Assembly: GCA_001179505.1 (NCBI GenBank)
Contig: CDMY01000206.1
Coordinates: forward strand, 1-64,000
Source: Vitrella brassicaformis CCMP3155
Lineage: Eukaryota; Protista; Chromerida
Length of the DNA: 64,000 bases
Direction: 5' to 3'
Under the pieces are notes generated by a model, which worked only from the letters and a program-made list of their open reading frames with translations, was not told where the DNA came from and made no database searches. Below are positions 14,065 through 20,491 of the stretch, in pieces. The position numbers and the translations under genes were made by a program. Each line of letters begins with the position of its first letter. Position 1 is the stretch's first letter.

Positions 14065-17000
14065 ATGACGTCCCCCGCATCTCACGGCAGCTGCCGGTTT
14101 TTCCTCTGCCTGATCTGCATCCTCATGGCGGCGTCTGCTCTTCGTCTTGCGGCATCCCAGGCGAATCAAGGCTATGGCGATGGAGGCGCCGTCGGGTCCT
14201 TCGACGGTTCGTCGCACATTGGGTCGCTGGTCGGGCGGCCGTACAGTCGGCAGGGAGGGCACTCGTACAAAGATCTGCCGGGCGTCATGCGCGATGACCT
14301 CCCGCCGGCCAGAGAGGTGGCGCAAAGGGTACGCACGCTCGAATGCACCATCGCACAGGTGTACACCCATCCAACCCTGCTTTTGCTTCAGGTCTTCAGC
14401 GCCCAGCAGGCTCCGCCGCACCCCTCTGTGTCAGCGCTGCTGTACGCCTGGGGCCAGCTGGTCATCACCGACATCGCACAGACCAACAAGTCCAAGGCTG
14501 AGCCAATCGACCTCTTCCCTCCATGTGGCAACGACACATCGTCAGCTGACCGGTTCTATCGCAGCGCATTCGTCACTCCTAACGGCGTGCGGCACCCGGT
14601 CAACCTGAAGAGCGCGTGGATTGATGGGTCGTCGCTGTATGGACACACTGAGGAAGAGCGCAGCAGCATCAGGGATGGGAAGGACGGCAGAGTGCGGCTC
14701 GACAAGAGAGGATTCCCAATGGATGTTGGAGCGGAGAATGAGAGTTGCTCTATCGCTTTTGTGGAGCCGCTGCTGAACCTGCATCCGCTGCTGAGCGTTA
14801 TGGCTATTGGTGAGGAGCCTCATTCCTTTTCTTTCGCGCGGTGCCCTGCTGATGTCGTCTGTATGGTGCATGTGTGTGTGTGCAGTGATGCTTCGTGAGC
14901 ACAACCGTTATGCGTCTCTATTGGCGTCGCGTCACAAGGAGTGGTCTGATGATGATGTATTCGCTGAGGCCAAGACGTGGGTCATCGCTCTCATCCAGAA
15001 AATCACCGTCAAACAGGTGTGCATGGGCAGCGAAGGAAGGGGGATGCTCCCACACGTCCCGTTGATGTGCCTTCCCGTGTGTTTGTGTGTGCAGTACTTG
15101 CCGGTTTTGCTGGGTCACCCCCTCCCAGCGTATGAGGGCCACGATCCGTCAGTGGACCCGTCGCCCGACGTATTCGTCGTTTCCTCAGCACTCAGGTAGA
15201 AACGTGACACAGCCGAATCCTACTCCTCTCACTGTTTGTCGGGGTGAGTTTCTTTCAGGTATGGCCACTTCGTCATCCCGTCGCAGGTGCCGCTGCTTGA
15301 TCCGACCTCACTGAAGCCTCACCCTGTAGGCCACCTGCCCATCGACTCGTCCATCCGTCAGCCATGCACTCTCACTCAAATCAACGTCGAGCCATTCCTC
15401 CTCGGCGCCCTGTTCCAGTCGGAGAGCCTCATGCACGGAGCCATTGTGTCGGGCGTGCGACACTCAAGCCGCACAGAGGCGTGCGTAGCTCCGACAAAGT
15501 GCATTGACTTCGACCTGGCGGCCACGAATGTGCAGCGTGGTCGCGATTGGGGCGTGCCGCTGTACAACGATGTGCGTCGGGCTTATGGGCTGGAGAGAGT
15601 CGCGAGTGTGAGTGAGCTGGTGGGGGATGGCGAGATGAAGGAGGCGCTGGAAGAGCTATACGGGTCGATCGATGGCGTGGAAGCTTATGTTGGGGCAAAT
15701 GTCGGTAAGAGATCAAGTAGACGTATCTATCCACCTCACCTGGCACGCCACCGATTTGTCACGTCAGAGATGCTTCGTCACGCCCAGAATGGGTCATTGT
15801 CCGGCGACCATGTAGCCGTCCTCTCACCTACCCACAAGACAGCCGTCCAAGAGACATTCCAGCACATCCGTCACTCTGACCCACGTTGGTTCGAGAGATA
15901 CTTCCCCTCCCTCGAGGCAGCTGTCGGGAACACGCTTGTGCCATTCCGAGACCCCGACCTGGCCAAGGAGCTTGTCAACATTACTCTGGCGGATGTGCTG
16001 CAGCGCAACACTCGAGTGTGTCGGTCAATACCCAGCAACCCCTTCCTACTGTCGCCTGCGACACTCTTCGCGCCTTCCAGCGACTCCTCTGCAGATGCTG
16101 GTGGTGTGTCACGGGCTGCTGTTCCCGCGTATGCGAGGTGCGACGATGGCAGCAAGGGAGGCGACAAGATGCGGCGGGCCGACGATTGGCTCCCTCCCAT
16201 GTCGCTTTGCGACGGGGCCGTGGTGGTGCGGTGGAGGTTTCTCAGCCCCCAGAAGGAGATCGAGTTCGAGTTGAGGGGCCATTCTACAGGGTGGGTGGGG
16301 CTGGGGCTCTCATCCACAGGCTACATGGCCCGGTCGACCCTCTTCATCGCCCACGCGGAGGGCGACCAGGCCATTGTCAGAGCCTACCAGGCTGGCAGCG
16401 ACAATAAGCCGCGCATAGATGAGGACAAGACAGAGATCATACGGGTGATTGGGGGCAAGATCGACGGCGAGTGGACGACAGTGAACTTCGTCCTGCCTCT
16501 GAGCGAGGTTGGCAACGTGGGAAGGGAGGAGTGGCTGCTGGCTGCTGTGGGACCCGATGGAGTCAAAGGCGTCACAGAGGGACGCACGGAGGTGACCAGA
16601 CAAAGACAGACCAAGAGAAGTTGGTCTCTTGAATGGGCAAATGGGCACCAAGATGTCTCTGTGTGTGTGTGTGTGCAGGATGCCTATCACAGCAGCAGGC
16701 GTCAGGCGGTGCGTGTGGACTTCGCGCAGGGCAGCGTGACGGCGGTACTTGCTGCAGGCGATGGGCGGCGAGTCATGTATGTGCACGGGGTCATCATGTG
16801 GGGCGCCTCCACGGTCTTCGTCCCCGCCGGCGTCTGCCTCTCCCGCTACTTCAAACACACAACCTGGTAGGTGACTATAAGACACTCAAACACACAGCAT
16901 CATGTTGTGCGTGGTGGTGGTTGTGCAGGTGGCTCGTGACGCACGAGCGTCTGGGCCTCATGGCAGCCAGCAACATGGTCGGCCTGGCTGTGACGGCTCT

Positions 17001-20000: not shown

Positions 20001-20491
20001 AGAGTGTGGGCGGTGCGGGTGTGGGTGTGGGTGTGGGTGTGGACGACCCCTCCCTGCCTCCAACACAGGCCAAGAGCCCCAACAATCAAGACACCGACGT
20101 GGAAGTCGGCACGGTTGATGCGGCAGCCCTCAGACGGACGATCCCCTTCCTCTCGGCACTTGCACAGGCGCAATCGCAATCGCAGCGAGAGGACTTGCCT
20201 GTGGAGTCGCCATCCGAGACGGCCTTTTACTCTGTCGAGGAGTACCCCCCCACCTCGCCCAAATCGCCCGTCGTCAGGCAGGGCAACCCTGACCGTCGGA
20301 TGGATGCGATCCCGGGGACCATTATCAGCGACGAGAGGCTGAACATGGGGAGCGAGGCCTTTGAGTGCGATTGCCCGACAATCCGGTCCAGCCGTGTGTT
20401 GGTGTGTGGCCCGCAGTCGTTTAGGGACGCCATGCGGCTGTGTCTGAGGGAAATAGGCGTTCCAACCGAGTGCATCAAGTTCCCCGGCTGA
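14065..20491 (+). CDS. Multidomain membrane oxidoreductase: signal peptide, heme-peroxidase-like, DOMON, cytochrome b561, cytochrome b5, FAD/NAD(P)H reductase
   Basis: Peroxidase: WGQLVITD, N..SAWIDGSSLYG, LREHNR, ALRYGH, DLAATNVQRGRDWG. DOMON: GWVGLGLSSTGYM ... YHSSRR. b561: four His (VHG, THE, AHS, LHT) in TM helices. b5: GVYDVRGFLPSHPGG..DITAQF..HS. FNR: RSYS, GMSEHL, IAGGTG, VLVCGP. No in-frame stop once GT-AG introns are removed. Confidence 0.88.

Follow-up and report, generated by a model that had tools for sequence, protein, structure and literature searches.

Within the window analyzed here, a 64,000-nucleotide stretch (positions 1 to 64,000) of contig CDMY01000206.1 from the alga Vitrella brassicaformis CCMP3155, positions 14065-20491 of the plus strand are a single, real and expressed gene. 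The 1778-residue product joins, in this order, a signal peptide, a domain of the peroxidase-cyclooxygenase superfamily, a DOMON domain, a cytochrome b561, a cytochrome b5 and an FAD/NAD domain of the cytochrome b5 reductase type. We consider it probable, with room for real doubt, that this protein is a self-sufficient trans-membrane electron conduit, namely an NADH-driven reductase of the CYBDOM type that carries a non-canonical heme ectodomain. The gene fits the CYBDOM definition, with two additional fused ends.

The sequence has a G+C content of about 60%, and 14065-20491 appears as a row of open reading frame (ORF) pieces in shifting frames on the plus strand. Contigs assembled from public sequencing runs were mapped on window positions 14700-20600; the transcript evidence thus consists of assembled contigs, not single molecules. 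Contigs of run X4 are unspliced DNA; runs X5 and X6, which represent different samples and studies, both contain spliced RNA contigs, from which the following gene model was obtained.

14065-20491, plus strand: whole coding sequence, 15 exons, 5337 nt, 1778 aa (spliced RNA contigs of X5 and X6)
14065-14809, 14886-15016, 15095-15195, 15259-15704 and 15768-16591, plus strand: exons 1 to 5 (RNA contigs)
16679-16866, 16929-17242, 17321-17454, 17552-17819 and 17887-17944, plus strand: exons 6 to 10 (RNA contigs)
18008-18370, 18453-19004, 19106-19239, 19308-19735 and 19841-20491, plus strand: exons 11 to 15 (RNA contigs)

All 14 introns, 62 to 105 nt long, are bounded by GT..AG, and the spliced coding sequence is free of internal stops across its 1778 codons. 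A single X5 contig (5028 nt, depth 89) begins about 140 nt 5' of the ATG (near 13923, if collinear) and spans every junction up to 20040 within the last exon. The assembly breaks there at a (GTGGGT)n repeat, and a second contig runs from 20051 past 20600. Run X6 has identical junctions over three contigs (transcript contig depth 17), one of which (3061 nt) extends from the DOMON into the reductase, and junction 15704/15768 was also seen in run X1. Introns 16592-16678 and 17243-17320 sit in (TG)n repeats and do not appear among the joints of the read table; both are nevertheless spliced out, since only then does the distance of 1322 nt that separates the flanking pieces on the contigs of X5 and X6 add up. 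The initial annotation, made from the sequence alone, had proposed one spliced frame on one transcript, and the RNA contigs of the two runs bear this out: two or more adjacent genes are ruled out by one spliced contig with one frame.

A retained-intron reading of ORF 15287-16870 is likewise ruled out, because the RNA removes the in-frame introns 15705-15767 and 16592-16678. Intron length is divisible by three in 7 of the 14 introns (15017-15094, 15196-15258, 15705-15767, 16592-16678, 17243-17320, 17945-18007 and 19736-19840). At least 15705-15767 and 16592-16678 also lack an in-frame stop, so that ORF 15287-16870 reads through both, and gene calling blind to RNA would insert 21 and 29 spurious residues at these two positions. 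In several introns a (TG)n tract (14870-14885, 15080-15094, 16649-16678 and 17276-17320) takes the place of the expected polypyrimidine tract directly 5' of a GTGCAG acceptor, a sequence used by 6 of the 14 introns. A (CCTG)n-like tract at 17496-17526, within intron 17455-17551, showed a five- to thirty-fold excess of depth in all four runs and recurred in many contigs with unrelated flanks, as a genome-wide short repeat does; it caused false long joints, for example from 17524 to 20541. The transcribed 5' leader holds two overlapping minimal upstream ORFs about 40 nt before the main start codon, and the RNA contigs that run past 20600 point to a 3' untranslated region.

14015-14020, plus strand: minimal upstream ORF, ATG-TGA (direct sequence reading)
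14020-14028, plus strand: minimal upstream ORF, ATG-GCG-TGA (direct sequence reading)
20492-21241, plus strand: probable 3' untranslated region (RNA contigs past 20600; X5 coordinates imply an end near 21241 if unspliced)

The spliced frame resolves into the following modules.

14065-14160, plus strand: signal peptide, aa 1-32, hydrophobic core aa 12-30 (hydropathy peak 2.33)
14389-16081, plus strand: An_peroxidase domain, aa 109-579, exons 1 to 5 (Pfam; family profile, 327 bits)
16220-16741, plus strand: DOMON, aa 626-770 (Pfam DOMON 3e-12, CDH-cyt 5e-4)
16772-17406, plus strand: five-helix cytochrome b561 core, aa 781-945 (His columns, hydropathy, Lys/Arg distribution, homologue model)
17711-18465, plus strand: cytochrome b5, aa 1015-1195 (Pfam Cyt-b5 fragment match, family alignment and profile, RNA junctions)
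18466-19002, plus strand: Gly/Ala/Ser-rich linker of about 175 aa between b5 and reductase (composition; equivalent region disordered in the homologue model)
19003-20488, plus strand: FAD/NAD domain of the NADH-cytochrome b5 reductase type, aa 1375-1778 (Pfam FAD_binding_6, family profile)

Cleavage of the signal peptide is predicted from an Arg before the hydrophobic core and an AAS/Q-like site after it, and the peroxidase-family domain probably starts near aa 45. Pfam An_peroxidase matched three times on the raw pieces (7e-14, 3e-14 and 1e-22) and in all on four exon pieces (1e-22 to 7e-14), each time above the gathering threshold, as do DOMON (47 bits, cut-off 32.7) and FAD_binding_6 (22.6 bits, cut-off 21.1). 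Cytochrom_B561 scored 18.3 bits (cut-off 23) on a 104-aa exon fragment, with homologues at 18-39 bits, and phmmer comparison of this region with the homologues reached 1e-15; Cyt-b5 scored 18.7 bits (cut-off 23.7) on an exon fragment alone. NAD_binding_1 gave no match on the last exon, probably because about 160 aa are inserted into the NAD lobe; this insert is one of three low-complexity expansions along with the b5-to-reductase linker and about 100 aa within the b5. Profiles built from full-length homologues aligned to the protein collinearly and end to end, with 327 bits for the peroxidase domain and 289.5 bits over aa 626-1774 for the DOMON-to-reductase part. Every module listed by the initial annotation is therefore present on the plus strand and within the coordinates it gave, as indicated by Pfam, family profiles and motifs, and its statement that a NOX core is lacking also held, since a Pfam scan of all pieces returned neither a Ferric_reduct nor an EF-hand match. 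The protein is not a NOX or a DUOX, and its trans-membrane part is of the b561 type.

The candidate cofactor sites were assessed in family alignments, where the DOMON, b561 and b5 ligands and the RxYS, GGTG and CGP motifs are conserved across 17-20 homologues.

16316-16333, plus strand: motif TGYMAR with Met661, candidate DOMON heme ligand (invariant family column)
16682-16696, plus strand: motif AYHSS with His753, candidate DOMON heme ligand (invariant family column)
19352-19366, plus strand: reductase motif RRSYS (family alignment)
19595-19606, plus strand: reductase motif GGTG(MCA) (family alignment)
20405-20413, plus strand: reductase motif CGP (family alignment)

Met661 and His753 are the equivalents of M90 and H174, the heme ligands of the HYP1 DOMON (PMC10784544). 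The b561 residues His785, His817, His847 and His892 fall in columns that are invariant or nearly so, and pair as an outer (His785 and His847) and an inner (His817 and His892) heme site. The b5 ligands His1049 (in HPGG) and His1179 (in RPHS) also occupy invariant columns, which are about 24 positions apart in the family profile and are separated in this protein by the low-complexity insert within the b5. Thus, all eight axial heme ligands outside the distal side of the peroxidase domain are kept, together with all flavin and NAD motifs, and the ligand and reductase motifs picked out from the sequence at the outset (DOMON GYM and YHS, the four b561 His, HPGG plus a second His, and RxYS, GGTG and CGP) were all recovered as family-conserved positions. 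R805 corresponds to the conserved Arg of the first cytosolic loop of b561, which does not by itself separate ascorbate binding from heme-propionate binding. The reductase family profile was best matched by 2eix (3.5e-47), and b5 reductases and nitrate reductase are closest both by sequence and by fold.

Hydropathy indicates five hydrophobic helices after the signal peptide, at aa 781-945, and the two predicted cytosolic loops hold 10 Lys or Arg residues versus 1 in the two outer loops. The odd number of helices together with the positive-inside rule thus places the peroxidase and DOMON domains outside and the b5 and reductase in the cytosol. For a structural model, aa 528-1286 of homologue P0036 were folded with AlphaFold in place of the window protein, using a 17-sequence alignment. 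The model (mean predicted local distance difference test score 76.7) contains five long helices together with a beta-sandwich, b5 and FNR folds and a linker that is disordered. The layout that defines a CYBDOM, with a signal peptide, an outside DOMON, a five-helix b561 and an inside C-terminus, was accordingly found from hydropathy, the Lys/Arg distribution and the homologue model. The sidedness put forward in the initial annotation agrees with the helix count, the charge bias and the HYP1 precedent; an arrangement with DOMON and b5 on the same side of the membrane did not emerge.

Among characterized proteins the closest precedent is HYP1, which has a signal peptide, an apoplastic DOMON and a b561 of five trans-membrane helices with heme pairs H1-H3 outside and H2-H4 inside (PMC10784544). 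Electron flow through HYP1 across the membrane to Fe(III) and Cu(II) has been measured as a current (PMC10784544), and the protein reduces both metals (PMC10784544, PMC10784552). The window protein shares with the CYBDOM proteins (plant HYP1 and CRR, animal SDR2/FRRS1) the signal peptide, a Met/His heme-b DOMON, a five-helix, two-heme b561 and flow from inside to outside. CYBDOM proteins, however, use free cytosolic ascorbate, whereas this protein has a b5 and a b5 reductase fused on the inside and a peroxidase-family domain on the outside. The fused b5 and b5-reductase-type FAD/NAD domain resembles NCB5OR/CYB5R4 and the C-terminus of nitrate reductase (best PDB matches 2eix, 7rom, 1cne and 6mv1), but those proteins are soluble and donate to a Mo-cofactor or to soluble partners, whereas the module of the window protein is anchored to a cytochrome in the membrane. 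Cellobiose dehydrogenase likewise has a DOMON-like Met/His cytochrome that shuttles electrons from a flavin to external heme or copper, in line with the weak CDH-cyt match in Pfam; it differs in being secreted and soluble, with a GMC flavodehydrogenase, a sugar reductant and no membrane step.

From these features we infer the cofactor loading, the direction and path of the electrons, the preference for NADH, the acceptor and the host membrane. Cytosolic NADH, or possibly NADPH, would reduce the FAD of the C-terminal b5-reductase-type domain, which would pass electrons one at a time to the heme of the fused b5. From there they would enter the cytosol-side b561 heme (His817/His892), cross the membrane to the outer b561 heme (His785/His847) and proceed to the Met661/His753 heme of the extracytosolic DOMON and on to an outside acceptor. 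The built-in NADH reductase would thereby take the place of cytosolic ascorbate as donor, and the net activity would be the reduction of extracellular acceptors, either chelates of Fe(III) or Cu(II) or the heme of the ectodomain. We favor an NADH-driven CYBDOM because of the measured HYP1 current from ascorbate to Fe(III) and Cu(II) (PMC10784544), and because modules recombine around DOMON-b561 across the family. Since the peroxidase-like ectodomain is the constant fused partner of the DOMON in the family, it would be the likeliest docking or acceptor site.

What this ectodomain can do depends on its active site. The PDB entries matched best by the family peroxidase profile are the short peroxidases 8s6c (1e-166) and 6erc (5e-146). 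A PDB sequence search with exon 1 alone found no match, and the catalytic residues were therefore mapped via the family profile.

15194-15268, plus strand: proximal heme-ligand motif RYGH (His329), split by intron 15196-15258 (R-Y-G-H invariant in the family alignment)
14449-14475, plus strand: distal motif WGQLVITDI, with Thr135 at the distal His position and Ile134 at the heme-ester Asp position (hidden Markov model alignment)
14758-14787, plus strand: FVEPLLNLHP in place of aGDxRxNxNP, with Leu236 at the catalytic Arg position and Leu239 at the position of MPO Glu242 (family alignment)

The proximal side is intact, with RYGH (His329) and DLAATNVQRGRD, including the Arg and Asn partners. The distal segment WGQLVITDI, which aligns to the family consensus 'afgqfvahdl' and to 'WGQFLDHDL' of 8s6c (usual form WGQF(L/I)(D/A)HD(L/I)), lacks the distal His of competent peroxidases, and the catalytic Arg is also replaced (Thr135 and Leu236). 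The mammalian-type heme-ester Asp and Glu are replaced as well (Ile134 and Leu239), although the Glu is absent from many family members too. In known peroxidases that have lost the distal His and Arg, Compound I forms more slowly by orders of magnitude. A protein with Thr135, Leu236 and no ester residues is thus unlikely to carry out classical H2O2-dependent peroxidase chemistry, and from these substitutions we expect the ectodomain to serve as a non-canonical heme module, or in a structural capacity, and not to work as an H2O2 peroxidase. Compared with the closest solved relatives, the short peroxidases 8s6c ('lactoperoxidase', 528 aa) and Dictyostelium peroxinectin A (6erc), the window copy keeps the fold-wide motifs REHNR, RYGH and DLAAxNxQRGRD but is without a distal His, a catalytic Arg and the ester Asp/Glu, and is fused to a redox chain. 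The original assignment of a heme-peroxidase-family domain consequently holds for the superfamily match (327 bits) and the proximal His329, but not for the distal His and the catalytic Arg.

The missing distal residues bear directly on whether the protein is an analogue of DUOX, in which O2 would be reduced to superoxide or H2O2 outside and the peroxidase domain would use the oxidant for cross-linking or halide oxidation. The logic of the two systems is similar: like DUOX1/2, this protein combines in one polypeptide a peroxidase-homology ectodomain, a two-heme trans-membrane conduit and a cytosolic FAD/NAD(P)H domain. The family profile also matches the DUOX1 ectodomain 6wxr (4e-102), and the ectodomain of human DUOX lacks key catalytic residues as the window copy does. 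A reduced five-coordinate ectodomain heme could bind O2, and AIR12 has been linked to superoxide (PMC10784552). DUOX, however, is built on a six-helix NOX ferric reductase with EF-hands and a NOX dehydrogenase, without DOMON or b5, and its parts were undetected here by Pfam; moreover, the window peroxidase domain lacks the residues to use H2O2. The O2/superoxide couple lies well below the b561 heme potentials. With b561 potentials of about -19 to +144 mV (PMC10005133), O2 reduction is thermodynamically disfavored. Such potentials would suit the reduction of metals or of high-valent heme better, and DUOX-like O2 reduction is thermodynamically the least favored output. The likeness to DUOX is one of convergent architecture and not of membership, and we regard a DUOX-type function as quite improbable. 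An electron wire from NAD(P)H to the outside in one polypeptide, as originally suggested, is consistent with the single transcript, the ligands and the topology, but the DUOX-like output attached to it is weaker, and the proposed role in production of reactive oxygen species or wall cross-linking is not supported as stated, in view of Thr135, Leu236, the missing ester residues and the ill-suited b561 potentials. Under the NADH-driven CYBDOM reading, the loss of the distal His and Arg makes it more likely that metals or small molecules are reduced at the DOMON, or that a five-coordinate heme in the ectodomain performs some non-peroxidatic chemistry.

The state of the distal pocket varies within the family, with the canonical His and Arg in about half of its members (P0033, P0071, P0028, P0034, P0004 and P0077). 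A well-supported chytrid clade (P0008, P0143, P0137, P0056, P0079 and P0006) has the distal His one position off (WG..LH.D) and no catalytic Arg, and Cladochytrium has a second, canonical paralogue (P0028) besides its remodelled copy; given the changes in this clade, the distal pocket has been altered on more than one occasion within the family. Members with a canonical pocket could be trans-membrane NADH peroxidases, in which the DOMON heme would feed Compounds I and II and extracellular H2O2 or hydroperoxides would be converted to water with cytosolic NADH. Cytochrome c peroxidase and the bacterial di-heme peroxidases offer an analogy, with a His/Met electron-transfer heme fused to a peroxidatic heme. 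The peroxidase and DOMON are constantly adjacent in all variants, the family profile lies very near the active short peroxidases 8s6c and 6erc, and, from general peroxidase chemistry, electron transfer from b561 potentials (PMC10005133) to a high-valent heme would be downhill. We think that in the canonical members electrons passing to Compound I/II of the fused peroxidase would be most consistent with b561-type potentials. Since the window copy has Thr135 and Leu236, such an activity may belong to other family members or to paralogues and not to this gene, and we judge it unlikely as a description of the protein studied here.

The family itself was uncovered by whole-database HMMER with the largest piece, a 527-aa ORF, which supplied all distant full-length homologues; in that search no close relative emerged, with nothing below 1e-30, and the organism's own annotated protein was not among the matches. 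A word-indexed search with aa 520-1341 of the Rigifila protein P0005 returned only itself and a Rhodotorula nitrate reductase, as the method is too insensitive for this family. Many homologues have Pfam An_peroxidase, DOMON, Cytochrom_B561, Cyt-b5, FAD_binding_6 and NAD_binding_1 in that order. Five-module proteins occur in the protists Rigifila ramosa (Trinity transcript), Cyanophora paradoxa, Platysulcus tardus and the foraminifer Nonionella stella, in the chytrids Cladochytrium, Phlyctochytrium, Nowakowskiella, Thoreauomyces, Lobulomyces/Clydaea and Powellomyces, and in the glomeromycete Acaulospora. Their names are automatic only ("heme peroxidase", "Peroxidase mlt-7", "Cytochrome b5 heme-binding domain-containing protein" or "hypothetical"). 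Our literature searches found no description of the five-module fusion, although an earlier mention in the 2007 DOMON survey of Iyer, Anantharaman and Aravind is possible; DOMON fusions to FAD/NAD-binding oxidoreductases are mentioned in general terms (PMC10784552). This matches the expectation at the outset that homologues of the full architecture might exist without a characterized member; overall, this is a genuine, expressed and widespread family that apparently still awaits characterization.

Shorter variants include peroxidase-DOMON (a heterolobosean), peroxidase-DOMON-b561 (Diphylleia) and peroxidase-2xDOMON-b561 (Pyxidicula), as well as DOMON-b561-b5-FNR proteins without the peroxidase in AlphaFold DB clusters A0A507C7X0, I7ME00, A0CUC8 and A0A0G4IVJ2 from other eukaryotes. 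Because the peroxidase-less clusters exist, an NADH-fed CYBDOM core appears to be a unit of its own, and recombination of modules around DOMON-b561, without b5/FNR in some proteins and without peroxidase in others, points to the CYBDOM core as the functional hub. In Rigifila, P0151 and P0152 (779 and 788 aa) comprise only b561-b5-FNR and occur beside full-length forms of 1341 and 1345 aa; these short forms might be either fragments or alternative transcripts.

No member of this family is more divergent than the window protein, whose terminal branch of 2.32 is the longest in the tree. The family tree gave it no supported sister, and we claim no donor or sister lineage. A decaying or neofunctionalized paralogue, still transcribed but with a dead electron chain and serving as a surface or adhesion protein or without function, would account for the long branch, the lost distal residues and the three large low-complexity inserts. 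The retention of the eight axial ligands outside the distal side and of all flavin and NAD motifs, the frame kept intact over 15 exons, and the transcript contig depths in X5 and X6 argue against decay, which we consider very doubtful. Several observations nevertheless weigh against a working NADH-driven conduit. The inserts in the b5 and the NAD lobe, together with the very long branch, leave room for a functionally decayed paralogue; the b561 and b5 scores on exon fragments lie below the Pfam gathering thresholds; and heme and FAD binding is predicted from ligand residues only, for every family member. The P0036 model has a predicted template modeling score of 0.40, at which the packing of b5 onto b561 and of DOMON onto peroxidase is tentative. 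Finally, an inert ectodomain would leave the retention of its 327-bit family signal unexplained.

Downstream of the gene lies a convergent ABC-transporter gene, visible on the minus strand at 21622-22554 and beyond as a Walker B/D-loop region. At the 3' end of the redox gene, the outgoing RNA contig is covered about two-fold more deeply than the main contig, and it may reach into the 3' end of the transporter gene.

To our knowledge, two routes carry electrons across the plasma membrane of eukaryotes, the NOX/FRE flavocytochromes and the ascorbate-fed b561 proteins. A CYBDOM core with its own NADH reductase and an outer peroxidase-family domain would, if our reading is correct, be a self-contained alternative. 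The lineages that carry it include CRuMs, glaucophytes, stramenopiles, Rhizaria, Amoebozoa, chytrids, Glomeromycota and this alga. It is possible, though we put it forward only tentatively, that the five-module proteins and their peroxidase-less and reductase-less variants constitute a third ancient class of eukaryotic trans-plasma-membrane NAD(P)H oxidoreductases, in which cytosolic NADH directly powers an extracellular heme enzyme. The state of the distal pocket would decide whether this enzyme is an NADH peroxidase that faces outward and destroys H2O2 or an oxidase that reduces O2 or metals. As a single polypeptide holds every cofactor site, heterologous expression offers a direct test of the system, which could matter for iron and copper acquisition, for the control of extracellular peroxide and for the repeated origin of DUOX-like logic.

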